A DNA stretch of 64,000 bases, taken from assembly GCA_002269645.1 (NCBI GenBank), contig NIVC01003325.1:40082-104081 (forward strand), read 5' to 3'. This document shows, piece after piece, positions 5,293 to 60,784 of the stretch (position 1 is its first letter; the number at the start of each line of letters is the position of its first letter). Both the position numbers and the translations under genes were made by a program. This DNA comes from Macrostomum lignano (lineage: Eukaryota). The notes below the pieces were generated by a model, which had not been told where the DNA came from, ran no database searches, and saw nothing but the letters and a program-made list of their open reading frames with translations.

Positions 5293-8200
5293 ATGTCAGC
5301 CCATGGAAAATCTTCTGCAGCCCCTCATGTAGCCGCCAATGCAGCTCCTAGCGGTGACAAGGCCGACCCATTTCGCAACCGCAATGAGCTGAAGGCGAGC
5401 AAAAAACCGAAGCGCTCGCACGGCTCGTCGCATTATCGACCGAAAGCCCCAACTGAGCTGAACGCGCTGCCGCCGCTGAAAGATGCAACCAGCGCTGATC
5501 AGATTGAACTGTTCCAGCAGAAGCTGCAGCAGTGCCGAGTTGTGTTCGACTTCAGCGACCCCGTGTCCGATCTGAAATCGAAAGAGGTTAAACGGACCTG
5601 CCTGAATGAACTGGTTTACTTTGTCACTGTCACTAGGGGCGTGCTGCAGGACTCAACTTATCCAGAGATTATACGAATGGTGAGGAAATTTCAGTATTCA
5701 AGCCTGACAAGTGACATTTAAGCATTCCCCTGAGTCTTGGCATCTCAGCATTCCCCCCTGTGTGTCTTGGCATCTCGGCAATCCCCCCTGTGTGTCTTGG
5801 CATCTCAGCGTTCCCCTCTGTGAGTCTTGGCATCTCAGCTATTCCCCCTGTGAGTCTTGGCATCTCAGCTATTCCCCTCTGTGAGTCTTGGCATCTCAGC
5901 TATTCCCCTCTGTGAGTCTTGGCATCTCAGCTATTCCCCCTGTGAGTCTTGGCATCTCAGCTATTCCCCTCTGTGAGTCTTGGCATCTCAGCTATTCCCC
6001 TCTGTGAGTCTTGGCATCTCAGCTATTCCCCTCTGTGAGTCTTGGCATCTCAGCATTCCCTTCCCCCCCCCTGAGTCTTGGCATCTCAACATCCCCCCCC
6101 CCCTGAGTCTTGGCATCTCAGCATCCCCAAATCATGAAACGAGAGATTCAAGTAAATTGGGGCCTTATTGCGCAAGTTGGCTTTTAGTCTAAGAAACTAG
6201 AAATCCCTGGTCTGGATGGAGTGCTCCCAATGGTTGACTTATATTTGACATAATTTTTTCTCTTTATCCCTCCTACGCCTCATCTTTTCTCTCCCTAAAG
6301 TGCCCATTTACAAGTACAAAAATTTTCCTTACCCCCGCCAATGTACAAATGTACAAATGTACACATGCTTGGGTCACAAAGCCACCCACCCCTCCCCAAC
6401 CCCCCGCCAATTTACAAATGTACAAATGTACACATGCTTGGATCATAAAGCCGCCCATCCCCTCCCCCAATCCGCAGATTGCGTGCAACATTTTCCGCAA
6501 TCTGCCTCCGTCCGACAACGCCGAGTTCGATCCAGATGAGGATGATCCAACATTGGAGGCTTCTTGGCCACATCTGCAGGTCTGCTATAGCCTTTATAAA
6601 TCGTTTAATAACAATGCCTTAAAATGAAAGAAGTCTCCGAATGACCTGATTTCATAATATTCTAGTTCATCTACGAATTCTTTCTGCGCGTACTGGAGTC
6701 GCCAGATTTCCAACCTTCCGTGGCTAAAAAGTACATCGACCAGCGGTTCGTACTGCAGGTGTGTTAATAATGAAATGTTAATGTTAAAGTAACAAAATCA
6801 GATATTGATATGTCAACTACTCTACTGTTAGTAGAAATTCAAGTAAATGAATAGCAAAACATAAAACACGATAGCCATTTGCTTGTTCATCTACTGTTAG
6901 TAGAAATGCGAGTAAATAAATAGCAAAACATTAAACACGATAGCCATTTGCTTGTTCATCTACTGTTAGTAGAAATGCGAGTAAATGAATAGCAAAACAT
7001 TAAACACGATAGCCATTTGCTTGTTCATATACTGTTAGTAGCAATGCAAGAAAAATATGGCAAAAACTTTTAACTGTTACTAAGATTTACATTGAACTGA
7101 TCTGACAGTCTGATCACTTATCCCAATTTAATAATCCCTCTTCAAACCTCAGCTCCTCGAACTATTCGACAGCGAAGATCCTCGAGAGCGCGACTTTTTG
7201 AAAACTGTTCTCCACCGAATCTATGGCAAATTTCTCGGCCTGAGAGCTTTCATTAGGAAGCAGATTAATAATATTTTCCTGCGGTTCATCTATCAGACTG
7301 AGAAGTTCAATGGTATTGGCGAGTTGCTTGAGATTCTGGGCAGCATCATCAATGGATTTGCGCTGCCGTTGAAGGCTGAGCACAAGCAGTTCCTCATGAA
7401 GGTGCTGCTGCCGCTGCACAAGGCCAAGTCTCTCGGCATGTTTCACGCCCAGCTGGCCTACTGTGTAGTGCAGTTCCTTGAGAAGGACTCAACCCTCACC
7501 GAGCCGGTGGTGCTGGGGCTGCTCAAGTTCTGGCCCAGGACAGTCAGCTCCAAGGAGGTGATGTACCTCGGCGAGATTGAAGAGATTCTGGACGTGATCG
7601 AGCCGGCCCAGTTTGAGAAGATTATGAGACCGCTGTTTAGACAGGTGGCCCGGTCTGTGGGCAGCTCGCATTTTCAGGTAGGAACTCGTGCTTCTCTTTC
7701 TGTAAGGTATTGCATTACGGTTAGATAAGGCATGTTGTATGAATGCGTTGGCTGCGTTTTGCTGTCTGAGTAGCTTTTAGATACCTAGGATAGTTTTTAA
7801 AAACCTTTGGAAGTAGATAGGGTAGTTGGTAGTCACCTAGGGTAGTTTGTAAGTACTTAGGGTAGTTTATAGACAACTAGGGTAGTTTATAGACACCTAG
7901 GGTAGTTTGTAAGTACTTAGGGTAGTTTGTAAGTACCTAGGCTAGTTTGTAAGTACCTAGGGTAGTTTATAGACACCTAGGGTAGTTTGTAAGTACCTAC
8001 GGTAGTCTGTAGACACCTAGGGTATTTTGTAAGTACCTACGGTAGTTTTTAAGCACCTAGGGTAGAATTTAGTACCCGGGGTAGTTTGTAGATACAAGAC
8101 AATCCGAGTTCTCTAGTATGTATTTATTTTCAAAAGCAAGTTACAAGCTAACTGCACCAATCCGCAGGTGGCCGAGCGAGCGGTGCTCTACTGGAACAAT

Positions 8201-27689: not shown

Positions 27690-29501
27690 TCACGTGAACA
27701 TGGCTCTCGTATTCCGGAAGCTGTCTCTGCTTCTCTGCTTCTCCTCCTCCTCGGCCTGCCGCCGCAGCCGCTGCTCCCTCAGCTCGGCCTGCAGTTTGCC
27801 ATCAGCCGACTGGATGGCGATCTTGGACTCGAAGAAGTTCTTAGCCTCCATAACACCTACCTCTTCAACGTTGATCTCCGACACCTCAACGTAGCAGTCG
27901 TACCAGGCCATGAGCTCGCCAGAGTAGTCTAGCTGGCCGGCTCTGGCCTTGCGGAATATCGCCAGGAATTCGCGGAAATTAATGCGACTGTCGTGATCCT
28001 CATCGACCTGTCAATCAATCAAGGGATATTATTTTTTAAAAACACGCTTGATAAAAAGCCTGCCATGGGTCCAAAAATCAGGAAACTAAATTGGGTTAAA
28101 GGCTAAACAAAACTGCAATAAAGACATTTTATGAAATGTTGGGAAATACATTTTTGAAAAAAAGAACCAGACAGGAAGGAGGTGGAAAAGAGATTCGGGG
28201 GATTGAGAGGGAGGAGAAGGAGACAGGGAGAGGGAGAGACAGGGAGGAGAGGGAGAGACAGGGAGGAGAGGGAGACAGGGAGGAGAGGGAGAGACAGGGA
28301 GGAGAGGGAGAGACAGGGAGGAGAGGGAGAGACAGGGAGGAGAGGGAGAGACAGGAACGGGAGGGAGACAGGGAGGAGAGGGAGAGACAGGAACGGGAGG
28401 GAGACAGGGAGGAGAGGGAGAGACAGGAACGGGAGGGAGACAGGGAGGAGAGGGAGAGACAGGAACGGGAGGGAGACAGGGAGGAGAGGGAGAGACAGGA
28501 ACGGGAGGGAGACAGGGAGGAGAGGGAGAGACAGGAACGGGAGGGAGACAGGGACGGGAGGGAGACAGGAACGGGAGGGAGACAGGGAGGAGAGGGAGAG
28601 ACAGGAACGGGAGGGAGACAGGGACGGGAGGGAGACAGGAACGGGAGGGAGACAGGAACGGGAGGGAGACAGGAACGATACCATATACCGGTAGTTACGC
28701 GCACAAAATCCGCACCTCTTTAATCATCGACTTCAAACCCAGATGAGTCTGTGGCGCGCCCAGCTTCTCCATCATCAGTTTGAGATCGTTGAATCCGATG
28801 AAATTATCACCGTCGGCGTCGTACATAACGAAGGCTTCTTTGAGGCGATTGATGTCGCGATGGGAGAACTCGGGGAACTCCAGGCTGGGGTTGAATTTCC
28901 TTCTAGTAGCAGCCAGCTGCGGCGGCTTTTCCGGCAAGTCAGCGGGCGGCTCCGCGGCTGGCGCCGCTGCTGCTGGCGGTTCGGCGACGCCAGCTGAAGG
29001 ATTGGACGGAGGCGGCGGTGCTGGCGGCGGTGTCGAAGAAGCCGGAGGAGGCGGATTTCGTTTCTGCTGCTGAGGCGACGCGGCGATAAAGCTGAAGGAG
29101 GTCTCGGACACGTCGCTATCGGTGGACTCGGACTTCTCCAGCCTGGTGGCAAGTTTGGCTGCCAGCTGAGGGCACAGGCAGGGGCCGCAGCGAGCCAGCA
29201 GGAGCCGCTGACGTTCCCGACGCTCGCTCAACATGTCGTCGATGGCATTCGCGGCTGACTGATGCTCACACTGGGCTCCGGCTTCGCTGTCGGCTGCGAC
29301 TGCCCCGGCGGCTCCGGCATCTTCGCTGCCGGCATCGGAGAGTTGCAGACGGCGGGCGAGCTTCTCGGCCAGGTCCTGGTCCAGCTGCGGCTGCTGCAGC
29401 TGGGCGGAGATGCAGCTGGACGCGGCTGAGCTGCGGCGGCGCGTGAGCTGCTCCTGCTGCTCGGGCAGCTGTGACTGCGGCTGGGCCTCGTCAAAGGTCG
29501 T
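27690..29501 (-). CDS. EFHD2: EF-hand domain protein D1/D2 (swiprosin-1)-like; exons 29501-28716 and 28007-27690; start exon not found
   Basis: [46 protein letters not shown]|[40 protein letters not shown] plus a C-terminal coiled coil match EFHD1/2. Phase-0 GT-AG intron 28715-28008. The frame stays open back to a CGCAG acceptor at 29502. Confidence 0.9.
28215..28678. repeat. GGGAGAGACAGGAACGGGAG purine satellite in the EFHD intron
   Basis: Direct reading. Confidence 0.95.
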
Positions 29502-32135: not shown

Positions 32136-35100
32136 CTAAGTAGGCGAATCCTGAACCGCAGCCGCCAGAGCCCGAACCAGCTGCACTCCCAGCGCCCTGG
32201 CCAGCGGAGGCGGCACCGCGTTGCCAATCTGACGATGCCTGGCAACCAGGTCGCCAGCGAATCTGTAAGCATCCGGGAAGCCCTGCGATCTGGCGCATTC
32301 CCGCACAGACACGACCCGGTTCTGGGTTGGGTGCACCACTCGGCCCTGCTTGCCCATGGGCTCGGGATTGGTCACTGTGGTGGAGAAGAAGCCTTCGACG
32401 TCCAGCCTGCCATACAGGCCGGCCCAGTGGTTGTGCCGGTCGCCGGTGTGCGGCAGGCACCAGGGGATCAGCGTGTTGAGCTGCTTGGCCTGGCTGTCGC
32501 ATTTGCCGGGCTTGATGGCGCACGGACAGACGCCTCGGTCGCCGTGCGTGTAGCGGAGGCGGCGGGCCAGGGAGCCGTCGCTGAGAGTGATCTGCGGGCA
32601 TGGGGAGGGCGATGTTTGAGCTAGGTTTGGGACTTCAGTGAGCGATTCTCAGTAAGCATCAGGGCGATTCTCAGTGAGCATCAGGGTGATTCTCAATGAA
32701 CATCAGGGCGATTCTCAGTGAGCATCAGGGCGATTCTCAGTGAGCATCAGGGCGATTCTCAGTGAGCATCAGGGTGATTCTCAGTAAGCATCAGGGCGAT
32801 TCTCAGTGAGCATCAGGGTGATTCTCAATGAACATCAGGGCGATTCTCAGTGAGCATCAGGGCGATTCTCAATGAACATCAGGGCGATTCTCAGTGAGCA
32901 TCAGGGCGATTCTCAGTGAGCATCAGGGCGATTCTCAGTGAGCATCAGGGTGATTCTCAGTAAGCATCAGGGCGATTCTCAGTGAGCATCAGGGTGATTC
33001 TCAATGAACATCAGGGCGATTCTCAGTGAGCATCAGGGTGATTCTCAGTGAGCATCAGGGTGATTCTCAATGAACATCAGGGCGATTCTCAGTGAGCATC
33101 AGGGCGATTCTCAGTGAGCATCAGGGCGATTCTTAGCAATTATCAGGGAGATTCTTAAGTAATTATCAGGGGATTCTTAGGCAATTATCAGGGAGATTCT
33201 TAGATAATTATCAGGGGATTATGAGACAGTTATGAGGTTGATTAATAGAAGAATCAAGACAGGAATTAAGCACAAATACAAACCTCTACATTGGGCAGGT
33301 CGCGCCAGTCAGCTCCGGGACAAGTGGGAATCAGGGCCAGCCTCGCTTCAACCAGCGGAGTCAGCTGCTTAGTCACATGATCAGTGAGCTTGTCTGAATT
33401 GTCCAGCCGACCGGCCCGCATAATCAGCTGATAATGAGTCTTCGGCTTCGACCCGTAGGGCGCCGGCTGGTCCAGTCGGGATGCGCCGCCGCTGTCGATC
33501 ACCGGCAGGTCGCTCAGCGCGTCACCAACTGTGATTGGTCGAAGCGGGCCGCTGAAGCAGCCGCTGGCAGGCGAGGTCGGTGGTTCGTATCGGCGATCGC
33601 CGACTAGAAGGGCGAGGCCGGCGCAGGCTTTGGGCGAGAACGAGTGAACGGCGATTGGGAATTGGGCGAATTGGCGACCCGGAGCGGCGGCCAGGATGAT
33701 GAGGCGGCGACGAGTCTGCGGCACCCCGAACTGGCCGGCTTGCAGGATGGCGGCGCCTGCGATCGAGCGGATTAGCGTTAGTGGCTAGGGAGCTGCAAGG
33801 CCGAACTCATCAGCACGCCAGGAGACAGGGGGGGAGACAGGGGATTGGGGAGACGGGGGATGGGGAGACAGAGGATGGGGAAACAGAGGATGGGGAGACA
33901 GAGGATTGGGGACACACAGGGGATGAGGGGGACAGGGGATGAGGGGGACAGGAGATGAGGGGGACAGAAGATGAGGGGGGAGACGGGATGAGAGGGAGAC
34001 AGGGGGAGAGGGAGACAGAGGGAGAGGGAGAAAGGGGGAGATGGAGAAAGGGGAGAGAAAGACAGGGTGAGAGGGAGACAGGGGATGAGGGGGACAGGGG
34101 ATGAGATGAAACAGGGGATGAGATGAGACAGGGGATGAGGGGGACAGGGGATGAGATGAGACAGGGGATGAGATGAGACAGGGGATGAGGGGGACAGGGG
34201 ATGAGATGAGACAGGGGATGAGGGGGGCAGGGGATGAGAGGGGAGACGGGATGATAGGGAGACAGGGGGAGAGGGAGACAGGGGGAGAGGGAGACAGGGG
34301 GAGAGGGAGAAAGGGGGAGATGGAGAAAGGGGGAGAGAAAGACAGGGTGAGAGGGAGACAGGGGATGAGGGGGACAGGGGATGAGATGAAACAGGGGATG
34401 AGATGAGACAGGGGATGAGGGGGACAGGGGATGAGATGAGACAGGGGATGAGATGAGACAGGGGATGAGGGGACAGGGGATGAGATGAGACAGGGGATGA
34501 GGGGGCAGGGGATGAGAGGGGAGACGGGATGATAGGGAGACAGGGGGAGAGGGAGACAGGGGGAGAGGGAGAAAGGGGGAGATGGAGAAAAGGGGAGAGG
34601 GAGACAGGGGGGGGGAGGGAGACAGGGAAGAGGGAGACAGGGAAGAGGGAGACAGGGGATGAGGGGGACAGGGGATGAGATGAGACAGGGGATGAGGGGG
34701 CAGGGGATGAGGGGGGAGACGGGATGATAGGGAGACAGGGGGAGAGGGAGACAGGGGGAGAGGGAGACAGGGGGAGAGGGAGAAAGGGGGAGATGGAGAA
34801 AGGGGGAGAGGGAGACAGGGGGAGAGGGAGACAGGGAAGAGGGAGACAGGGAAGAGGGAGACAGGGGATGAGGGGGACAGGGGATGAGGGGGGAGACGGG
34901 ATGAGAGGGAGACAGGGTGAGAGGGAGACGGGGGAAGAAGAGAGGGGAAGAGGGAAAGAGGAGAGACTGAAATGAAGTAAGAATCGGGGAGATGAGAAAA
35001 GCAGTTGCACAAGATGGACACAGCGGGTTAGCTATAATACGAGACATGCATGTAGGACTTAGCCAACTCGAGTGTGAGCAAAAAAACTAAAAGACTCTCA

Positions 35101-38100
35101 ACTCGATGTGAAGGAGCCCCTTGCAGACTGAAATCTCTTTACAGCTGCAATCTGTTCTAGCTGCCATCGTTACAGTCAAGCTAGGGATGCCAGTATGGCT
35201 TCCAATTCGTTAATACGAAATGCGAAGGCATGGCCAGAGCTGACTAATGCTTGATGAGCAGCCTGGATGGCATCTTGGAGATAGACACAAGATAGACAGG
35301 GTGAGATAAGACACGAGACAGGGTAAGATTAGACACGAGAGAGACAGGGTGAGATTAGACACGAGATGGACAGGGTGAGATAAGGCACGAGACAGGGTGA
35401 GATTAGACACGTGAGAGGCAGTCACAGGGTGAGATTAGACACGTGAGAGGCAGTCACAGGGTGAGATTAGACACGAGAGAGACAGGGTGAGATTAGACAC
35501 GAGATAGACAGGGTGAGATAAGACACGAGAGACAGGGTGAGATAAAACACAAAGCTACGGCAGACAGGGTGAGATAAGACACTAAGCTACGGAAGACAGG
35601 GTGAGATAAGACACTAAGCTACGGGAGACAGGGTGAGATAAGACACCAAGCTACGGCAGACAGGGTGAGATTAGACACGAGAGAGACAGGGTGAGATTAG
35701 ACACGAGATAGACAGGGTGAGATAAGACACGAGAGACAGGGTGAGATAAAACACCAAGCTACGGCAGACAGGGTGAGATAAGACACCACGCTACGGGAGA
35801 CAGGGTGAGATAGAACACCACGCTACGGGAGACAGGGTGAGATAGAACACCAAGCTACGGGAGACAGGGTGAGATAAGACACCAAGCTACGGCAGACACG
35901 GTGAGATTAGACACGAGAGAGACAGGGTGAGATTAGACACGAGATAGACAGGGTGAGATAAGACACGAGACAGGGTGAGATAAAACACTAAGCTACGGCA
36001 GACAGGGTGAGATAAGACACCACGCTACGGGAGACAGGGTGAGATTAGACACGAGATAGACAGGGTGAGATAAGACACCACGCTACGGGAGACAGGGTGA
36101 GATTAGACACGAGATAGACAGGGTGAGATAAGGCACGAGATAGACAGGGTGAGATAAGACACGAGAGACAGGGTGAGATAAAACACTAAGCTACGGCAGA
36201 CAGGGTGAGATAAGACACTAAGCTACGGGAGACAGGGTGAGATAAGACACTAAGCTACGGGAGACAGGGTGAGATAAGAAACCAAGCTACGGCAGACAGG
36301 GTGAGATAAGACACCACGCTACGGGAGACAGGGTGAGATTAGACACGAGATAGACAGGGTGAGATAAGACACCACGCTACGGGAGACAGGGTGAGATAAG
36401 GCACGAGATAGACAGGGTGAGATAAGACACGAGAGACAGGGTGAGATAAAACACTAAGCTACGGCAGACAGGGTGAGATAAGACACTAAGCTACGGGAGA
36501 CAGGGTGAGATAAGACACTAAGACACGAGAGACAGGGTGAGATAAGACACTAAGACACGAGAGACAGGGTGAGATAAGACACTAAGACACGAGAGACAGG
36601 GTGAGATAAAACACTAAGCTACGGCAGACAGGGTGAGATAAGACACTAAGCTACGGCAGACAGGGTGAGATAAGACACTAAGCTACGGCAGACAGGGTGA
36701 GATAAGACACTAAGCTACGGCAGACAGGGTGAGATAAGATACTAAGCTACGGCAGACAGGGTGAGATAAGACACTAAGCTACGGGAGACAGGGTGAGATA
36801 AGACACCACGCTACGGGAGACAGGGTGAGATAAGACACTAAGCTACGGCAGACAGGGTGAGATAAGACACTAAGCTACGGCAGACAGGGTGAGATAAGAT
36901 ACTAAGCTACGGCAGACAGGGTGAGATAAGACACTAAGCTACGGGAGACAGGGTGAGATAAGACACCACGCTACGGGAGACAGGGTGAGATAGAACACTA
37001 AGCTACGGCAGACAGGGTGAGATAAGACACTAAGCTACGGAAGACAGGGTGAGATAAGACACCACGCTACGGGAGACAGGGTGAGATAAGACACCACGCT
37101 ACGGGAGACAGGGTGAGATAGAACACTAAGCTACGGCAGACAGGGTGAGATAAGACACTAAGCTACGGAAGACAGGGTGAGATAAGACACTAAGCTACGG
37201 CAGACAGGGTGAGATAAGACACGGCAGACAGGGTGAGATAAGACACGGCAGACAGGATGAGATAAGACACGGCAAACAGGGAGAGATTATGAACATACAA
37301 AGCTCACTCACCCAGCTGATACCCCATGGCCAGCAGACATCGCATGGTGAGCTGCAGCACGCAGGACTTATTATAAGCGGCAAAATTGCGCACATTCTCC
37401 AGCAGGAAATAGTCGGGCCTGTAGAAATCGGCGTAGCTCAGAAACGAGGCCACTAGAGAATTTTTCAACTTGCTGGCCTCCCGGGCGCTGAACCGGTTCA
37501 TGCCGCTGTAGCCCTGACAGGGCGGGCCGCCGCACAGCAGCTGCACTTGGCCGCGCTGGGGAATCGGCAGCCGGCGACTGTCCGGGGTCTCGGACACGCC
37601 GTCCATGGCCAGACGGAGCAGCCGGTTGCAGTCGTCGGTGAGGACGGCGCAGTCAGGATGGTTCAACGCGAACGCTTTGGCAGCGTCCGGGTCGCGCTCG
37701 ATGGCCCAGTGGGTGACGGCGGCTCCGGCTTGGTGCAAACCCTCGGAGAGGCCGCCGCAGCCGGAGAACACGTCTAGGCAGCGAAGCGGCTTCACCTGGG
37801 CGATTGGGAGAGGAGTTGAGGCAAATTTTGACTCAGAGACTATCTGACAATAAGGTCTGACTCATCATAAATCACCTGACAATAAGGTCTGACTCATCAT
37901 AAATCATCTGACAATAAGGTCTGACTCATCATAGATTATCTGACAATAAGGTCTGACTCATCATAGATTATCTGACAATAAGGTCTGACTCATCATAGAT
38001 TATCTGACAATAAGGTCTGACTCATCATAGATTATCTGACAATAAGGTCTGACTCATCATAGATTATCTGACAATAAGGTCTGACTCATAGATCATCTGA

Positions 38101-41100
38101 CAATAAGGTCTGACTCATCATAGATTATCTGACAATAAGGTCTGACTCTTAGATCGACTGACAATAACGTCTGACTCTTAGATTATCTGACAGTAAGATC
38201 TGACTGTTAGCTAACCTGAGCCAGTTGAGCAGCTTCATCCCGCATAGCCTGCAGATCTACAGACTCCTGCTCAACGCAGACAGACTCCATCTGCCCAGTG
38301 TCAGCATCAAACTGAATATCGTAGTAGAAGCGGTCTGGACCAGACAGAAAGAACTGCTCCGGCGAGGTGTACAATCCTTCCAATTCGTCCGCGTGAACAA
38401 CCGTACAGAGGCCTCTGACGCGCTCGGAGACAACTACGGAGCATTCCTCGTCGCTGCAGTACAGAAGGTGCAGCGGCCGGAGCCGGTCAGAGTCCAAGGT
38501 GGCGACCGCGTCCTCGGGTCTGTAGAACATCTTCAACCGAATTCGCAAGGGGAACGACGGGCCTCGCTTGAATATTTCAACAATTCGTCCGATCTGAAAG
38601 CGGGAACGCGAAGGGATTGGTGAATGTGAGATTGGTGAATGCAAGCAGATTGGTGAATGTGGAGAGAATAGTGAATGCAAGCAGATTGGTGAATGTGGAG
38701 AGAATAGTGAATGCAAGCAGATTGGTGAATGTGGAGAGAATAGTGAATGCAAGCAGATTGGTGAATGTGGAGAGAATAGTGAATGCAAGCAGATTGGTGA
38801 ATGTGGAGAGAATAGTGAATGCAAGCAGATTGGTGAATGTGAAGAGATTAGTGAATGTGAGATTGGTGAATGTGAGATTGGTGAATGTGATTGGTGAATG
38901 TGAGTTTATTGAATATGAGATTGGTGAATGTAAGATTAGTGAATGTGAGGAGATTGATTAATGTGAGGAGATTAGTGAATGTGAGGAGATTGGTGAATGT
39001 GAGGAGATTGGTGAATGCGAGGAGATTGTTGAATGTAAGGAGATTAGTGAATGTGAGGAGATTAGTAAATGTGAGATTAGTGAATGTGAGGAGATTGGTG
39101 AATGTGAGGAGATTGGTGAATGCGAGGAGATTGTTGAATGTAAGGAGATTAGTGAATGTGAGGAGATTAGTAAATGTGAGATTAGTGAATGTGAGGAGAT
39201 TGGTGAATGTGAGGAGATTGGTGAATGCGAGGAGATTGTTGAATGTAAGGAGATTAGTGAATGTGAGGAGATTAGTAAATGTGAGGAGATTAGTGAATGT
39301 GAGGAGATTGGTGAATGTGAGGAGATTGGTGAATGCGAGGAGATTGGTGAATGCGAGGAGATTGTTGAATGTAAGGAGATTAGTGAATGTAAGGAGATTA
39401 GTGAATGTGAGGAGATTAGTAAATGTGAGGAGATTAGTGAATGTGAGGAGATTGGTGAATGCGAGGAGATTGTTGAATGTAAGGAGATTAGTGAATGTGA
39501 GGAGATTAGTAAATGTGAGGAGATTAGTGAATCTGATATTGGTGAATGTGAAGAGATTGATTATTGTGAAGAAATTACAAGTATTGAATGTGAGGATATT
39601 GGTGATTGTGAAGAAATCAGTGATCACGAAGACAGTGGTTAATGCCAAAGAGAAGACAAAACAGATCACCTGATAAGGCGCCGGAGTAGACTCATTGGAT
39701 CCTTTCACGTAGGCAGTCTTGCGATACCGCTCAGTGTACACGGAGTCGGGATAAGGCGAATCCTTATCTGCCTTAGCCGGCTGCTGCTGCTGCTGCTGTG
39801 AAGTCCGCCTGGTTGATTCATTTGCAAATTTATGCGAGCCAGGCTCCAGGTAGCAACAGCCTAGCAACTTGTAGACCTGGCCTCGCCAGCGGAAGGCCGA
39901 GTAGCGCTGCTTGTTGGCACCTGCTGTTGAAGCGGCCGAAGCTGCAGCTGTCAGAGCTCGGCAGGGTCTGGGGACGGCCTCCAGACAGGAGCGCCGCCTC
40001 GCTGAACAGGTTGAGCAATCTCTGTAGCTGTCCTCGTCATCTTGGTTGCCATCTGCATCGGCATCTGGATCGACCGGCTCCTCCTCGGCTTGGTCGTTTG
40101 GCGGGTCAATGAAGAATCCTTTATCCGGCAGGTAGACTTTCTGGTAGAACAGACGGCCTGCGGATGCGTTCGCCTCCATCTCGGCTGCGCTCGCCGTCAC
40201 TAGGCGGTCACCTGAGATTCCAGGTGTGTTTTAATGTGTCAATCATCAACTGGGTTTGTCAATCATCAACTGGGTTTGTCAATCATCAACTGGGTTTGTC
40301 AATCATCAACTGGGTTTGTCAATCATCAACTGGGTTTGTCAATCATCAACTGGGTTTGTCAATCATCAACTGGGTTTGTCAATCATCAACTGGGTTTGTC
40401 AATCATCAACTGGGTTTGTCAATCATCAACTGGGTTTGTCAATCATCAACTGGGTTTGTCAATCATCAACCGGATGTATCAATCATCAACCGGATGTATC
40501 AATCATCAACCGGATGTATCAATCATCAACCGGATGTATTAATCATCAACCGGATGTATCAATCATCAACCGGATGTATCAGTTATCAACCGGACGTATC
40601 AATCATCAACTGGATGTATCAGTCATCAACCGGATGTATCAATCATCAACCGGATGTATCAATCATCAACCGGATGTATCAATCATCAACCGGATGTATC
40701 AATCATCAACCGGATGTATCAATCATCAACCGGATGTATTAATCATCAACCGGATGTATCAATCATCAACCGGATGTATCAGTTATCAACCGGACGTATC
40801 AATCATCAACTGGATGTATCAGTCATCAACCGGATGTATCAATCATCAACCGGATGTATCAATCATCAACCGGATGTATCAATCATCAACCGGATGTATC
40901 AGTCATCAACAGGATGTATCAATCATCAACCGGACGTATCAATCATCAACCAGATGTATCAATCCTGCACGATATCAATTATGGAGGATATGTCGATTAT
41001 CAACTAAACGCGTCATCATCAAGGACAGGTGCATCCAGCCATCAAACATGGTCACAGACTGTCTCCAGCAGCAACCACGCCACCCCCTCACCTGCAGATC

Positions 41101-44100
41101 TTCGCGCCACATCCAGCCGCATCACCACGGCGGCCAGTTCGGCGCTGCAGCACTCGTCCTTGGTGGCGAACAGCTCGCACGGATCCGCAGTCCGGCCCAG
41201 GATGGTGTCCTCGCCGTGCAGGAAGGCGCTGCCGTGAAACCTGGCCTGCAGCTGCGGCCCGCTGCCCTCGGAGTACAGCCTGGTGATTCGGGCTGCGCGC
41301 CACGAGCCGGGCCTGGCGTCGCGCCAGCTCGAGCGCCACAGGACGAAATCGCCGATCGATAGGCGGCAGCGACTGCCCAGACGGACAGCGGAATAGTACA
41401 GGCGGAGCCGCCGGCCCGCCGCTACCGAGGGCGGCCTGCGCTGAATTGCCTCGCCGAGGAACTCGACCGGGTCGCCAGCCTGCGGAGTGGCGACGCGTCT
41501 TTGTTGCTATGCGGGTGTAAATTGAAGGGATCTGGGAGGCTGGTGGCTCAGCAACTGAGGATCTGGGAGGCTGGTGGCTCAGCAACTGAGGATCTGGGAG
41601 GCTGGCCCAGCAACTGAGGATCTGAGAGGCTGGTGGCTCAGCAACTGAGGATCTGGGAGGCTGGCCCAGCAACTGAGGATCTGGGAGGCTGGCCCGGCAA
41701 CTGAGGATCTGGGAGGCTGGCCCAGCAACTGAGGATCTGGGAGGCTGGCCCGGCAACTGAGGATCTGGGAGGCTGGCCCAGCAACTGAGGATCTGGGAGG
41801 CTGGCCCAGCAACTGAGGAACTGGGAGGCTGGCCCAGCAACTGAGGATCTGGGAGGCTGGCTCAGCAACTGAGGATCTGGGAGGCTGGTGGCCCAGCAAC
41901 TGAGGATCTGGGAGGCTGGTGGCTCAGCAACTGAGGATCTGGGAGGCTGGCCCAGCAACTGAGGATCTGGGAGGCTGGCCCAACAACTGAGGATCTGGGA
42001 GGCTGGCCCAGCAACTGAGGATCTGGGAGGCTGGCTCAGCAACTGAGGATCTGGGAGGCTGGTGGCCCAGCAACTGAGGATCTGGGAGGCTGGTGGCTCA
42101 GCAACTGAGGATCTGGGAGGCTCGTGACTCAGCAACTGAAGATCTGGGAGGGCATCGGCCCCATCTGAAGATTAGCGACATCGCAGGCCAGACACCAATG
42201 GCATTGCTGTAAACCCCGACCCTGACCTGCACCAGCGCCGACGCATTGAGCCGAGCCAGTCGCAGAAACATGTCGGCCTTGGTGGAAGTGACGAAATCTG
42301 CCGCCCCGGCGTCGTCGTCCAGCTGATGCTGGAAGATGGAGTCGAACACGGAGCGCACCAGCGGAGTGACGGTGGCCTTGGTGTCGGCCGACTGTGCCGC
42401 CTGCTGCGGCTTGGCCTGCACAATCCGGCGATGACGCCGAGGTTGCGGACGCCGCTCCGGCGCTCGAGACCTGCGATCCCGGCGTCCGGTCGGTCGATCG
42501 ACATTTTCCTGGTCGGCTTCTTCGCTGTCGGCATCTTCGTTGAGTCCGCCGAGCTCAACCAGGGTCTGCATGCAGGGCTGCCGCATCAGCTCCGTGCCCT
42601 CTTCATCGTCCATCGCCCGGACCTGCTCGATGAGGAAGCTGGCGTGCGACTGAACCGCATCGGCGCTGATGGGCGCCACCAACTCCAGCAACTCCTCGTA
42701 TTCCACGGCCTCCTCTTTGCGACTGTCGTCTAGCAGGCACTCGGTGACGCGCTTGGTTAAGTGGATTTTTTCCAGGGCCGACTCCATCAGGAACCTGCGG
42801 GTGCGTGGGCGTCATGCCGAGATGCTTTCATTGAGGACCTTTGGGATTTTAGATTCCAATCTGGATCCGGGGGATCTCCTATTGGGATCTGAGGACCCCA
42901 ATCTGGGATTTGAGGACCCCAATCTGGGATTTGAGGACCCCAATCTGGGATTTAAGGATTCCAATCTGGGATTTGAGGACCCCAATCTGGGATTTAAGGA
43001 CCCCAATCTGGGATTTGAGGACCCCAATCTGGGATTTGAGGACCCCAATCTAGGATTTGAGGATTCCAATCTGGGATTTGAGGATCTCAAGCTAGGATTA
43101 GAGGACCACAATCTGGGATTTGAGGATCTCAAGCTAGGATTAGAGGACCACAATCTGGGATTTGAGGATCTCAAGCTAGGATTAGAGGACCACAATCTGA
43201 GATTTGAGGATCTCAAGCTAGGATTAGAGGACCACAATCTGGGATTTGAGGATCTCAAGCTAGGATTAGAGGACCACAATCTGGGATTTGAGGATCTCAA
43301 GCTAGGATTAGAGGACTACAATCTGGGATTTGAGGATCTCAAGCGAGGATTAGAGGACCACAATCTGGGATTTGAGGATCTCAAGCTAGGATTAGAGGAC
43401 CACAATCTGGGATTTGAGGATCTCAAGCTAGGATTAGAGGACCACAATCTGGGATTTGAGGATCTCAAGCGAGGATTAGAGGACCACAATCTGGGATTTA
43501 AGTATTCCAATCTAGGATTTGAGGATTTTTTAGGATCTGGGATTTAAAGCCACCCGCATACTGACCCCTTTCACCTGTATTCCGAGTGCGGCTTAGCCAG
43601 AATATACTCGCCATACACGGTGCTGAAGCCCACAATGGCCCTCTGGCCGCCGTCAAAGCCGGACAGCCACCACTCGTCGATCGGCCCCATCCGACAGCAG
43701 GCCACCATCGTCGAGCCGGCCGCCTCCTCGTCTTCAACAGCGGCGTAGACGGGCACAAGCAGGCCGCTGAAGTACAGCTCGACATTGTCTTCAATCAGCC
43801 CGGTGTCGAACGGGCACAGGTGGCCGGCCGGGCAGTACACGGAGAAGTCCGTCAGCTTCTGCTGCGGCCGGGCGTCGGCTTCGTCAGACAGGACGGAGCC
43901 CTCGGACACCAGCGACAGGGCCGGGTGGGTCAGGGCCACGCACTCCTCCTGGGCGTCGGGTCTTTCGTTGCGAAATTGCACGGCGTCATCTAGAAACTGC
44001 TTGCAGTATCGACAGCGGGTATTGCTGCTTCCGGTAGCAGAAAGGTTGCTGCCAGTCTTCTGCTTTTGCTGCGATCGGCGCTGCTTCTGCTTCTTAGCGG

Positions 44101-44155
44101 CATTATTGCTGCTCGGCGACAACTGACCATTGGTCAGCTTTCGTTTCTTACTCAT
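32136..44155 (-). CDS. DNMT1: DNA (cytosine-5)-methyltransferase 1; exons 44155-43575, 42794-42227, 41506-41092, 40211-39670, 38593-38216, 37795-37312, 33756-33284, 32591-32136; 1298 aa
   Basis: RFTS ([59 protein letters not shown]); BAH1 ([16 protein letters not shown]); BAH2 ([18 protein letters not shown]|IGRI). Catalytic motifs: [96 protein letters not shown]. Seven GT-AG introns with consistent phases; 3897 nt ending in TAG. Confidence 0.97.
32640..33230. repeat. 22-nt minisatellite (GATTCTCAGTGAGCATCAGGGC), DNMT1 intron 7
   Basis: Direct reading. Confidence 0.95.
33815..34980. repeat. GGGAGACAGGGGATGA purine satellite, DNMT1 intron 6 (3' part)
   Basis: Direct reading. Confidence 0.95.
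35275..37290. repeat. GACAGGGTGAGATAAGACACTAAGCTACGGCA (24-32 nt) minisatellite, DNMT1 intron 6 (5' part)
   Basis: Direct reading. Confidence 0.96.
37840..38205. repeat. 32-nt minisatellite (ATCTGACAATAAGGTCTGACTCATCATAGATT), DNMT1 intron 5
   Basis: About 11 copies. Confidence 0.95.
38615..39600. repeat. 18-nt (GGAGATTGGTGAATGTGA) array with a 36-nt dimer block, DNMT1 intron 4
   Basis: Direct reading. Confidence 0.95.
40235..40975. repeat. 20-nt array in two blocks (AATCATCAACTGGGTTTGTC, then AATCATCAACCGGATGTATC), DNMT1 intron 3
   Basis: Direct reading. Confidence 0.96.
41525..42150. repeat. 28-nt minisatellite (GAGGATCTGGGAGGCTGGCCCAGCAACT), DNMT1 intron 2
   Basis: About 21 copies. Confidence 0.96.
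42885..43545. repeat. 21-nt array (GAGGACCCCAATCTGGGATTT) grading into a 42-nt dimer, DNMT1 intron 1
   Basis: Direct reading. Confidence 0.96.
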
Positions 44156-52848: not shown

Positions 52849-54113
52849 TTAAAGTCTAGTGGTGAAGATTTCAGATCCTCTCGGGAGCGTCACAATAGGA
52901 AAAGACCTGCCCGGTGTAGTTCTGTTCAAGGCAGATGGAGCGGCTTCCTTATTTATACAAGGCAGACAGCGACAACTAAAGAGCCTCAGAAATCTCTGTC
53001 GATAGTTCGGGCTCTTCCACAACAGGAGAAGCCAATTGCCGCTCTGGTTGAACAGAATCAGGGCTTGGCTCACTTGCGAGATGTTCAGCAGAGCTCGCAG
53101 TAGCTGTGCATCAGCTTCGGTCTCATACTCACTGATGATTTGTACGGCTAAAATGGTCAAGGCGCTGGGCAGAGAGCACACAGTGAGCAGGACTGACATG
53201 GCGACGCACACGATCGTGTTGGTCATCGTGTCCCTCTCGTCAGCAGCTGTCGTGAGCGACGCCGACAGCTGACGTCGTTGGCGCAGGATGGCGACCAGCT
53301 TGCAGGCCAGGTAGGAGTTTGTGAGCAGCACGCAGAATATCGGCAAGGTTGGCGGGTACAGAAGCAGTATCATGTATACACCAAGAAGCACTTTGGCTGC
53401 TCCAGAAATTCTCGAGAAGACCATGCAACCGATCACCCGGGGACCGTGGGTTGAGAACCTCATTTCTTGCCAGCCGTACACCCCCAGGCAGGGGGTACTT
53501 AGGCACATCGAAACAGCCGCAATCCAAGCGCAAACTCGCCAGGCAGTTCGATGCGATAGGCTCTAAAAATAATTATGTATTCTATATGTATCACACACAT
53601 ACATGTACACGTAAATCCGCGATATACCTGGAAGCGGAACGGCATAGCCAGGCACAGAGCTCGGTCCAGCACCATCGCCAGGAAGATGCACATCGACTGC
53701 AGACTGAGCCAGTGCTGTGCAAATCGATACACAGTACACAATATGGCTGAGTTGTTGTACACGATGAAGCCAAACCGACTGCCGCTGATCCAAGGCAGTC
53801 CCCGAGCGAGGAACAAGCCAAGGAAGCCGCCGATAAGCATGTAGGCGCTGTCGGCGATCGCCATGGCGCCCAGGTAGACGTTGAGTCGAGTGCGCTCGGC
53901 TCCGCGACCCAGCGTGACCCACACGGTGGCGCAGTTACCGAACAGACCGGACACCGTCACAAGAGGCAGCAGGAGGCCCGTCACAACTCCGTAGGCTGTG
54001 CTGATCGGACAGAAGATGTGTCGGTTGGGCGCATCGGGCCGGCAGTCCTCCAGAGCACTATCCAGACTGGTGTAGAAGATGGTTTCAGTGTACTTGGAAG
54101 AGTTGCTCAGCAT
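52849..54113 (-). CDS. Rhodopsin-like (class A) GPCR, peptide (FMRFamide-type) receptor-like; exons 54113-53628 and 53562-52849; 399 aa
   Basis: Seven hydrophobic segments: TM1 GLFGN, TM2 AMAIADS, TM3 LDRA, TM6 CSLP, TM7 NQSGNWLLL followed by SPNYRQRF. A 65-nt GT-AG phase-0 intron joins ORFs 53499..54113 and 52849..53508. Confidence 0.92.
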
Positions 54114-58758: not shown

Positions 58759-60784
58759 TCAGGCCTCCTCGGAGTCACCTGTCAGAGGAATGACAAAAAA
58801 ATGGCTTGCTGGATCCCTGTCCGCTCCAGCAAGATTGGCAAGCAGATTCGCAGGCAAAATCCAGCACTTTCGCTCAGGTGTGCCAGTTAGAACACCAGAT
58901 GTCATCCTGTACAAGCCGATTCCCAGACGCAAAGATGGATATGGGTTGGCGTAGATGTTGTCAACTGGGTGTAAAATCCTGCCAGTGACTTGATTAGCTT
59001 CACTTACAGCTTCGATTAGGACGCATACTTTGTCGATTATGCAACAATTATCACCTCGCTTTGTGCTGAATTTCAACGGTGGAATGCGCTGCTCATTCAA
59101 CAGAAGATCGCGAACTCTGAGCACCTGCTTAACTGAATGCGCTGCCATGTGCCTTGTCACCTTTACGCGGCGCTTTACAGATCCAAGAAAGTTTTCGAAA
59201 GGGAAAGTCGAAAAGTTGTTTAAACTGCCTAGCTTTCGGACAAACTCATCCAAATGAAGAATAGTGTGAAGATTGAAACTTATAAACTTCTGGCCGTAAA
59301 GATGGGCAGCCCGTTCAACAAAAACTTCAATGCAAGTTTTTGCCTGCGTCCACCACTTGGAGTACCTTTCGTTGGAGTATGCGTAAATGGCGAAATGGAG
59401 GTAAAGAAAGTGGTTATACCTTTCTTCATTTAAAATGCCTTTGAAGAGGACAGGTCCTAGGTACAGCAAGTACTGTCTGAATTCAGTAGCCTTCATGTGC
59501 TTTAGTTCCAAGTCGATTTTCCGGGGTCTTCGTTGAAAGTTTGAAGGTGTCCAACCGGCAGCCATAGTAATTCGGTCGCCCAATAGGCTCATCGGACCGG
59601 GATAGACGAGACACTTCTTGCCATTAGATTTGTCGAAAAATAGGTAAAATAGCTTCCTTGTGACTCCAAGGCAGACGGCATGCTGGTAGTCAGGGGGAAA
59701 AGCATCGACAAAACTAATGTTAGGCAAATTTAGAAGGGGCGATAGAGCGATTTTTTTATTTTCCTGGTTAGACTCCTTTCCCTCTCGGTATTGTTGGCTG
59801 CTACGAGACTCCCCGACGCTCGTTGAAAATGTTACTCTGTTGTCGGTATAAGGTCCAGTAGCCCTGCAGTACATGCAACCGACGTACGACATGTGCCCTT
59901 GAGTTACTGAGACCCAGGCTCGAGCAGGCGCATCGCAAACAAATCGGATAGTCGAGAAGCTGATGCTTAAATTTTCGATAATTTTATGGGACCCGTAAGA
60001 AAACGTTTAGCCTCGTCGCAAAATTGTCGAAGATAATCATTCAGAGGTGGCTTGCCACAACCAGCCCATACGGCTACTGGAAAAGGTCTGCTGAATACGC
60101 TGGGAATAGACATTAGTATGGGCCAAAGACCGAAGTGGCTTGCTCGGTACAAAGGCAAGCCGTCAAAATTAACGATGGCTTCAATTTTGTAAACCTTCTC
60201 AGTTTCACTATCGTGTTGTAGATATTCTGGCTTCATGTGCAGCTGGTTTTTGCGAAACATTAGTTCTAGATTTTTCAGAATCGAAATGTAGCGAAAATGG
60301 CCTTTTCCCATGGACTCCAATTTTTCCGTTGGATCGCCAGCATTGATGACGGCCTCAATAGAGTTGACAGACTTCGGCGCAGGCAAGCCTATGTCTCTTA
60401 GACCATCAACAAGGAATTTTTTAGATCCACGACTTAGGTTGAAACAAGAAAAGTAGACTACCAGCAAGGCGAATATTTTATCTTCTAAAGAGCGGTCATC
60501 CTCTTTCTTGTCAATCTCCTCATCTTCATCGCTGCAAACTCGCGCGAACTCGTCAAAATCAGGATAGCTGCCATTGTCGTTGCCAAGATCTGGATCAGTA
60601 CCTTCATTGACTTCTGCTACAGAGGACTCCGAAGCGATGAAACCGGCGACTCTCCCAGAATCATCTGCTTCGACTACTTTTCTTTTTTCTCTTGCAGTGC
60701 GATGTCTTCCAAAGCTTCTTGTTCTCCTTCCATGAACAAGCCCAGCAAATCCTTATTTGCTTGTCGCCTCAATTGCCTTGTCAT
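58759..60784 (-). mobile_element. CACTA/EnSpm (CMC superfamily) DDE transposase, interrupted by two -1 frameshifts (~60678-60688 and ~59982-59985)
   Basis: NFDGLPLY..LWPIL (D1); FVCDAPARAW..GH..CMYC (D2 plus CxxC, read in the -1 frame between ORFs 59967..60467 and 58759..59892); DYQHAVCLGV; KATEFRQYLLYLGP; NLHTILHL; STFPFENFL (E). Confidence 0.9.

Follow-up and report, generated by a model that had tools for sequence, protein, structure and literature searches.

The locus raises the question of whether the DNA methyltransferase DNMT1 of the flatworm Macrostomum lignano, encoded in the 64-kb window (the whole stretch of DNA that was analysed), has lost the CXXC zinc finger and the acidic autoinhibitory linker of other animal DNMT1s, and what kind of enzyme remains. 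According to secondary sources citing Wasik 2015, this species retains DNMT1 and DNMT3 with 5mC at a low level; no other genetically tractable flatworm model is reported to keep both enzymes, and other flatworms have lost both (PMC9246332). The reading that we favour, with a probability of about 80%, is that the gene encodes the functional DNMT1 orthologue of M. lignano, a trimmed animal maintenance DNA methyltransferase from which about 70–75 residues (CXXC finger and acidic linker) were lost secondarily.

Gene model and genomic copies

Minus-strand translation reproduces exactly the DNMT1 peptides of an earlier note on this DNA, and the best PDB match of the resulting model is human DNMT1 (E = 4e-256). 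The exon chain proposed there stands as to its GT-AG junctions and its agreement with the GenBank protein PAA51979.1 (P0113; BOX15_Mlig013419g1, 1289 aa), except that exon 3 starts at 41479 in GenBank and not at 41506. Downstream of the exon 2 donor (CAG/GTCAGG, the slash marking the junction) there are two acceptors. The upstream one (CATAG/CAACAA) yields the earlier chain and a product of 1298 aa, whereas the downstream one (CCGCAG/GCTGGC), 27 nt further and in frame, yields a product identical to the GenBank protein, which is 9 aa shorter and otherwise the same; the residues QQRRVATPQ are exonic in the former model and intronic in the latter. Both acceptors are conserved in three of three genomic copies, and the choice between them leaves the conclusion on the CXXC finger unaffected. 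The splice chain rests on the GenBank annotation, which derives from a transcript-guided pipeline (StringTie/TACO and a de novo transcriptome; PMC5730564).

All eight exons are common to the three genomic copies, which lie on three contigs and each have an intact ORF. Between the copies there are 36 synonymous and 8 non-synonymous differences (pN/pS = 0.073 over the whole coding sequence), which places the gene under purifying selection. The CpG observed/expected ratio of the coding sequence is 1.0, with none of the CpG depletion expected after heavy methylation in the germline. Tandem repeat makes up 87% of intron 2, in the form of a 28-nt satellite at 41528-42151 (21.4 copies by TRF); this satellite is present in all three copies, in introns of 720, 457 and 485 bp, and its flanks are unique sequence continuing directly into the exons.

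Table 1. Features of the M. lignano DNMT1 gene (positions in the 64-kb window)
Feature	Position	Strand	Remarks
Whole DNMT1 gene	32136..44155	(-)	8 exons, clean ORF, all junctions GT-AG
Exon 1	43575..44155	(-)	
Exon 2	42227..42794	(-)	RFTS C-terminal half, disordered acidic/basic spacer, activating helix, start of residual linker
Acidic insert	42488..42532	(-)	Directly after RFTS C-lobe; lineage-specific, missing from consensus of other DNMT1s; predicted disordered
Activating helix	42329..42382	(-)	Residues 332-349; counterpart of human F631/F632 region
Residual Cys-free linker	42227..42328	(-)	Stands where CXXC finger would be; AF2 pLDDT <50 except one low-confidence helix
Intron 2	41507..42226	(-)	720 bp; no CXXC coding potential
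27-nt stretch	41480..41506	(-)	Codes QQRRVATPQ; between two in-frame AG acceptors
Exon 3	41092..41479 (or 41506)	(-)	Pre-BAH1 W/F-x-G-E motif, then BAH1
Exon 4	39670..40211	(-)	
Exon 5	38216..38593	(-)	
Exon 6	37312..37795	(-)	
Exon 7	33284..33756	(-)	
Exon 8	32136..32591	(-)	Stop included
TRD segment ending NPEPMGKQ	32361..32474	(-)	Hydrophobic 5mC-methyl pocket residues; few differences from animal consensus

Absence of the CXXC finger and the acidic linker

The CXXC finger and the acidic linker are missing from the M. lignano DNMT1. A Pfam scan of the full 1298-aa model, which the earlier note had proposed as a check, identified DNMT1-RFD, two BAH domains and DNA_methylase, and gave no match to zf-CXXC (PF02008) at E ≤ 1. 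A DNMT1-specific CXXC HMM was built from 70 sequences, with controls scoring 55-84+ bits; it had no match in the protein, its best match in six frames of the window reached only E = 0.22, and that in six frames of two paralogous loci (L001 and L002) E = 0.23, both at noise level, over about 127 kb comprising the window and the two further copies. No cysteine occurs from residue 269 to 420. The activating helix and BAH1 are separated by about 40 Cys-free residues, compared with about 110 in other animals (CXXC and acidic linker), and a clean alignment gap spans the finger and the acidic CXXC–BAH1 linker; the alignment with human DNMT1 reaches residues 46-302 and 420-1296 only. The autoinhibitory linker (EADDDEE...) was not found in the protein, where the residual linker contains only DDD and scattered acidic residues. 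The earlier note had described both this direct passage into BAH1 and a satellite intron unable to encode the finger, and each description is borne out, the latter by TRF, by the six-frame HMM search and by the presence of the satellite in all three copies.

A hidden CXXC exon was rejected, as the same HMM search gave nothing above noise in the window and the two paralogous loci. No CXXC-bearing DNMT1 paralogue was found among the annotated M. lignano proteins in databases: the entries P0001, P0002, P0113, P0114, P0115, P0208 and P0211 represent one gene or frameshifted fragments, all without CXXC. P0115 (76% identical), P0208 and P0211 were considered as a divergent paralogue and rejected, having proved to be pieces of this gene, with frameshifts, in an older assembly.

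A CXXC exon could in principle have collapsed within the satellite intron, been skipped by the gene model or be supplied by another isoform or paralogue. Assembly tends to collapse arrays such as that of intron 2, which varies in length between copies; exon 3 has two alternative acceptors; and the paralogue check covered annotated proteins rather than the entire genome. However, the donor, satellite and acceptors are the same in three separately assembled copies, the unique satellite flanks lead straight into the exons, the HMM search found nothing across the three loci, the annotation was RNA-seq guided (PMC5730564), and the seven DNMT1 entries retrieved hold no second, CXXC-bearing gene. We regard an artefact of this kind as very improbable.

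Retained domains and predicted structure

The methylase domain (PF00145, E = 3.5e-45) contains catalytic motifs I, IV (PCQ), VI (ENV), VIII (QxRxR), IX and X, with DVFSGCGG at position 827, GPPCQG at 909, ENVRNF at 952, QTRRR at 994, GNAVPPPLA at 1261 and another motif at 1235. The RFTS/RFD domain (PF12047) is present in one copy, composed of residues 94-233 (E = 1.8e-31), and aligns to human RFTS structures (E = 5e-47). Its zinc ligands C48, C51, C107 and H111 are kept, as is the Cys/His cluster of the TRD, in line with the earlier note, which had called the catalytic motifs and these ligands intact. The tandem BAH1 and BAH2 domains are matched by PF01426 in two stretches. The TRD 5mC pocket (W-C-L ... 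H-W-A-G-L ... P-M-G-K-Q) is intact by sequence. The roles of the pocket residues follow from known structures (PMC6316889), reportedly including those of Song et al. 2012; PMC6316889 also describes what TRD loop II does.

The activating helix, as defined in PMC12474915, is predicted to be helical (AF2 pLDDT of about 81); its human counterpart sits immediately before CXXC in canonical DNMT1. Residues 280-330 have a pLDDT of <50. The AF2 core superposes on DNMT1(729-1600) with a TM of 0.89-0.90, and the whole chain, poorly, on 4WXX with an RMSD of about 14 Å and a TM of 0.66. In this model the RFTS domain is placed differently from 4WXX, which leaves retained RFTS autoinhibition without structural support. 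A role for the acidic insert that follows the RFTS domain is speculative. The DMAP1-binding domain (PF06464) gave no Pfam match, and no regex match was obtained for the PIP box or the (GK)n repeat, both of which are present in the controls P0012 and P0006. These three elements are also missing in many invertebrate DNMT1s.

Two human RFTS residues that clamp the linker, R582 and K586 (roles given in PMC6316889), correspond to Q and E in M. lignano. An 'RK' pair occupies these positions in 86/103 CXXC-bearing proteins versus 1/14 CXXC-less ones, a correlation based on the 14 of 61 CXXC-less proteins in which the motif was locatable, and one in which phylogeny and the overall divergence of the CXXC-less forms act as confounders.

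The conservation of the catalytic apparatus bears on whether the gene still serves methylation. On an alternative reading, DNMT1 would be disappearing from flatworms, planarians and parasitic species having lost it already; this copy would then no longer maintain methylation and would survive, if at all, in a non-catalytic capacity of the kind suggested for Tribolium and Dimorphilus. Decay or repurposing of this kind would fit the loss of both DNMT1 and DNMT3 in other flatworms (PMC9246332), the coincidence of a CXXC-less DNMT1 with 5mC loss in the annelid Dimorphilus (PMC11292947), the low methylation reported in the secondary sources, the CpG ratio of 1.0 and the long branch of the protein in a crude neighbour-joining tree. 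Against this, pN/pS is 0.07 over the whole coding sequence with ORFs intact in three copies, conservation extends to every catalytic motif and to the 5mC pocket, for which a purely structural role would have no need, and the same secondary sources report 5mC to be present and DNMT3 retained. We therefore consider this reading unlikely.

Predicted consequences for the enzyme

All functional statements on the M. lignano DNMT1 are inferred. Judged by its anatomy, the protein is an enzyme without one autoinhibitory layer, as the earlier note had proposed; the effect of the CXXC/linker layer on enzyme behaviour is disputed even for mammalian DNMT1 (PMC6316889). The trimmed maintenance enzyme, with the predicted layout RFTS, activating helix, short disordered linker, BAH1, BAH2 and methyltransferase, would still copy CpG methylation onto hemimethylated DNA. 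The preference for hemimethylated DNA would be expected to persist because it resides in the catalytic domain and the TRD. The catalytic domain of Arabidopsis MET1 shows a >9-fold preference for hemimethylated CG without CXXC (PMC12474915), and the preference thus does not need the finger. The RFTS domain would probably still gate the enzyme. The mammalian mechanism, in which the finger binds unmethylated CpG and thereby positions the acidic linker over the catalytic cleft, would be unusable, and the RFTS clamp, reinforced by the linker in human DNMT1, would probably be weaker because the basic partners R582 and K586 are replaced.

The missing CXXC/linker plug and a weakened clamp might instead leave the enzyme de-repressed, so that it would methylate unmethylated CpG de novo to a substantial degree and shape the methylome differently from canonical DNMT1. 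Mouse DNMT1(650-1602) becomes more active on unmethylated DNA when the CXXC–CpG contact is disrupted or the linker deleted, and the activity of human DNMT1 rises when residues 701-711 are deleted (both PMC6316889); the Q and E at the clamp positions point in the same direction. By contrast, full-length DNMT1 with disrupted CXXC–DNA binding has unchanged specificity (PMC6316889), MET1 keeps its hemimethylated preference (PMC12474915), the 5mC pocket of the M. lignano enzyme is intact, and the acidic insert after RFTS could compensate. On this balance de-repression appears doubtful. A further suggestion, to which we give little credence, is that CXXC/linker loss, R582Q/K586E and the acidic insert together rewired autoinhibition and did not merely reduce it; the result would be a naturally relaxed enzyme capable of appreciable de novo methylation, an intermediate on the flatworm path to DNMT1/DNMT3 loss, and the unusual tandem-repeat introns might be among its targets.

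Taken alone, the absence of the finger is an incremental finding at the level of annotation; public databases already contain the gene together with its domain content. The minimal RFTS–BAH–MTase enzyme of M. lignano is a natural test case for the disputed question of whether maintenance fidelity in vivo depends on the CXXC/linker module.

Comparison with known systems

The M. lignano protein is 38-43% identical to mammalian DNMT1 structures and shares with them (human 4WXX; mouse 3AV4, 3PT6 and 4DA4) the RFTS zinc ligands, activating helix, BAH1, BAH2, TRD 5mC pocket and catalytic motifs. Unlike these, it is devoid of the CXXC finger, acidic linker, DMAP1-binding domain, PIP box and (GK)n repeat, and carries Q and E at R582/K586.

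The CXXC loss in M. lignano is real, yet such losses have recurred in other invertebrates. The earlier note had mentioned reports of CXXC-less DNMT1 among invertebrates, and PMC11292947 and the present survey bear this out: such forms are already known from many arthropods and two annelids, as well as from plants (MET1). The annelid Dimorphilus gyrociliatus and one paralogue of Capitella teleta likewise combine RFD and an intact methylase without zf-CXXC and the DMAP domain, a likeness based on the published description (PMC11292947) rather than on deletion boundaries. DNMT3 and 5mC are both gone from Dimorphilus, whereas the secondary sources describe M. lignano as keeping DNMT3 and low 5mC. 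Annelids being a different phylum, the loss was presumably independent.

Arthropod CXXC-less DNMT1 or DNMT1-like proteins were among the closest representatives in a library of 1.8 billion proteins searched with residues 44-1243 of P0001. They share RFD, two BAH domains and DNA_methylase without PF02008 (36-46% identity to the query), as verified with Pfam for eight of them; examples are Tigriopus japonicus ALB00264.1 and proteins of Macrosiphum, Chelonus, Menopon, Copidosoma, Halotydeus and Belonocnema. The DNMT1s of Strigamia, Ornithodoros, Cloeon and Notodromas are probably also CXXC-less. Unlike the M. lignano protein, many of the arthropod forms are paralogues beside a canonical copy, and some entries may be annotation errors; P0070 resembles intron retention, and P0071 keeps the CXXC end and the acidic linker. 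An intronless CXXC-less DNMT1 (P0101) was observed on a 16.7-kb Logan contig. For the question of shared ancestry among CXXC-less forms, a crude neighbour-joining tree built on the catalytic domain came out as a ladder in which long branches dominate, and it was informative only in nesting Belonocnema among Hymenoptera.

Plant MET1 (Arabidopsis, 9M5X) is likewise a DNMT1-family maintenance enzyme without CXXC that prefers hemimethylated CG (PMC12474915), but it is only about 25% identical to the M. lignano DNMT1, with a lower TM. The MET1 type has two RFTS domains, compared with the single RFD stretch that Pfam gives here, and the best matches of the M. lignano protein are animal DNMT1s. With this protein, a platyhelminth joins the annelids and arthropods in which a growing number of independent CXXC losses are on record.

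Gene model and identity

The gene, whose exon chain was extended in both directions, comprises eight GC-rich exons (56–70%) and introns of 420–3555 bp, with GT-AG at all junctions and an unbroken reading frame. Translation of 42794–42227 and 41506–41092 on the minus strand reproduces the peptides of the earlier note letter for letter. The product is DNMT1: it matches Pfam DNMT1-RFD (residues 94–233), two BAH stretches and DNA_methylase, and its top PDB sequence matches are human and mouse DNMT1 structures (E = 4e-256). It corresponds to GenBank entry PAA51979.1 of the free-living flatworm Macrostomum lignano (BOX15_Mlig013419g1, 1289 aa), which lacks nine residues of our model, QQRRVATPQ, and is otherwise identical.

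These residues reflect the start of exon 3. The previously proposed exon chain holds in its frame; for this acceptor the deposited model uses another site. We take 41479 as the better-supported boundary on the strength of the annotation pipeline, because the NIVC01 (Mlig_3_7) annotation was built from RNA-seq with StringTie/TACO and a mapped de novo transcriptome (PMC5730564). Either choice leaves the reading frame and the absence of the CXXC finger unaltered. The two in-frame AG acceptors, 27 nt apart (41480–41506), are kept in all three gene copies and could be alternative 3′ splice sites, so that the linker would contain QQRRVATPQ in some isoforms and lack it in others.

Features of the window and the further gene copies
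Feature	Position	Strand	Remarks
DNMT1 gene	44155–32136	minus	
Intron 2	41507–42226	minus	720 bp, separating exons 2 and 3
Tandem repeat in intron 2	41528–42151		28-nt unit, 21.4 copies
Exon 3 acceptor, deposited model	41479	minus	CCGCAG|GCTGGC, in-frame
Exon 3 acceptor, earlier note	41506	minus	CATAG|CAACAA
Acidic insert	42488–42532	minus	directly after RFTS C-lobe, followed by Arg-rich stretch
DNMT1 intron repeats	32592–43574		periods 42/84, 28, 20, 18, 32, 16+32+24 and 22 nt
EF-hand/AIF-1-like gene	28695–29494	minus	directly downstream of DNMT1, same strand
Exons resembling PP2A B56 regulatory subunit	5248–7728	plus	by eye only
GPCR-like ORF pair	52849–54113	minus	by eye only
Two long transposase-like ORFs	58759–60467	minus	by eye only
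DNMT1 copy L001	NIVC01000866		same assembly
DNMT1 copy L002	NIVC01000112		same assembly

Absence of the CXXC finger and acidic linker

M. lignano DNMT1 physically lacks both the CXXC finger and the acidic linker, as the earlier note had claimed. The protein has no Pfam zf-CXXC match even at E ≤ 1, and phmmer aligns it to human DNMT1 over query residues 46–302 and 420–1296, with nothing aligned in between. In a multiple alignment, a conserved 18-residue helix aligns with mammalian TKATTTKLVYQIFDTFF, and approximately 40 residues separate it from the landmark that is conserved next, VEFLGE (other DNMT1s: ISWLGQ/VKWIGE). Other animals have approximately 110 residues there, and the resulting gap spans the RCGVCE..CQQPDCGKC..CKDM..KFGG..CPN finger as well as the EADDDEE stretch. 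No cysteine occurs between residues 268 and 421. A profile made from 70 distinct DNMT1 CXXC segments, with which true DNMT1s score 55–84+ bits, found nothing in six frames of the window better than E = 0.22, on the opposite strand within a repeat. Intron 2, mostly a 28-nt satellite, likewise holds no CXXC coding sequence, as had been proposed.

A CXXC-supplying isoform or paralogue, which would have overturned this reading, was found neither among annotated M. lignano proteins nor in the further copies L001 and L002, which are present because the DV1 line carries duplicated chromosomes (PMC5730564). Both copies contain all eight exons at 98–99% identity and encode a product of 1287 aa; intron 2, 457 and 485 bp long, carries the same satellite, its donor and both exon 3 acceptors are kept, and the CXXC profile again gives no match. 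No other recovered M. lignano DNMT1 entry has a CXXC, in a search including 1.8 billion representatives, and no annotated protein suggests a CXXC-bearing paralogue. Candidates that looked divergent were rejected as paralogues, each being this gene itself or a piece of it with a frameshift.

Conserved motifs and predicted structure

The window copy differs from the other two by 36 synonymous and 8 non-synonymous changes (pN/pS = 0.073), which indicates strong purifying selection since duplication. Catalytic motifs I, IV (GPPCQG), VI (ENVRNF), VIII (QTRRR), IX and X were located, as were the zinc ligands of the RFTS and the TRD Cys/His cluster, in agreement with the earlier description; the TRD segment forming the 5mC-methyl pocket is also kept, and a CxxC pair stands in the alignment at the conserved FCxSC motif that lies C-terminal to BAH1. 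In an AlphaFold2 model of residues 76–1275 (mean pLDDT 70, pTM 0.68), the BAH1-BAH2-MTase core superposes on DNMT1(729–1600) structures with TM 0.89–0.90. Confidence is high for the activating helix (pLDDT ~81) and falls below pLDDT 50 over most of the residual linker (residues 350–406), which contains one weak helix; no folded module is predicted in the finger's place.

At this one locus, too small a basis for interpretation, the CpG observed/expected ratio is 1.0 in the DNMT1 coding sequence versus 0.65 over the whole window. Each of the seven introns is 82–89% tandem-repeat array with its own unit, unique sequence being confined to short stretches at splice sites. The paralogous copies (L001 10576–21740) have the same repeat families in different copy numbers, and the genes nearby have introns of similar appearance; 15% simple and tandem repeats are given in the genome paper, which does not mention this intron pattern (PMC5730564). 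L002 has the EF-hand/AIF-1-like neighbour as well; the protein encoded there matches Pfam AIF-1 and EF-hand_7.

Implications for autoinhibition

In mouse DNMT1(650–1602), CXXC bound to unmethylated CpG places the linker across the catalytic cleft, and loss of the CXXC contact or linker makes the enzyme more active on unmethylated DNA; in human DNMT1 in its free state, D700 and E703 of the linker make salt bridges to RFTS R582 and K586, and removal of residues 701–711 increases activity (PMC6316889). Because finger and linker are absent, neither mechanism would be available to the M. lignano enzyme. The R582 and K586 counterparts are Q and E (PCMQTLVEL versus PCMRDLIKL, numbering checked on the phmmer alignment). 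Among the proteins in hand, the 'R..K' pair occurs in 86 of 103 CXXC-bearing DNMT1s versus 1 of 14 CXXC-less forms with a locatable motif, which suggests co-loss with CXXC, confounded by relatedness and the general divergence of CXXC-less forms. The AlphaFold2 model does not reproduce the RFTS arrangement of human structure 4WXX. The post-RFTS acidic insert is lineage-specific (45 other DNMT1s lack it in their consensus) and predicted to be disordered; speculatively, it might compensate.

M. lignano DNMT1 is probably still a maintenance methyltransferase, since it has an intact 5mC pocket, full-length DNMT1 whose CXXC–DNA binding was impaired retained specificity (PMC6316889), and the Arabidopsis MET1 catalytic domain, without CXXC, prefers hemimethylated CG more than 9-fold (PMC12474915).

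Comparison with known DNMT1s

Excerpts from secondary sources cite M. lignano as keeping DNMT1 and DNMT3 with low 5mC, and make no mention there of DNMT1 domain content (PMC11292947, PMC9246332, PMC10658182). The searched protein libraries contained no other flatworm DNMT1. A 16.7-kb Logan contig (SRR26629862; 7700–11191) carries an intronless gene for a CXXC-less RFD-BAH-MTase protein of 1163 aa, which groups with a louse DNMT1 in a crude tree.

The observation is confirmed and its interpretation sound; the gene was already annotated, and its worth lies in offering a tractable natural experiment on what the CXXC/linker module does, not in being a new kind of enzyme. The earlier statement that CXXC-less DNMT1s exist in plants and some invertebrates is borne out by plant MET1, which resembles M. 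lignano DNMT1 in this respect, by the annelid Dimorphilus gyrociliatus and one Capitella paralogue (PMC11292947), and by many arthropods. Among the closest library representatives, Macrosiphum, Chelonus, Menopon, Tigriopus (a cDNA-derived sequence), Copidosoma and Halotydeus are Pfam-confirmed; Belonocnema, Notodromas, Cyamophila, Strigamia, Arctopsyche, Ornithodoros and Cloeon are identified by the CXXC profile alone. The arthropod forms include some paralogues and perhaps a few annotation errors. M. lignano DNMT1 is one more case of this recurrent domain loss.
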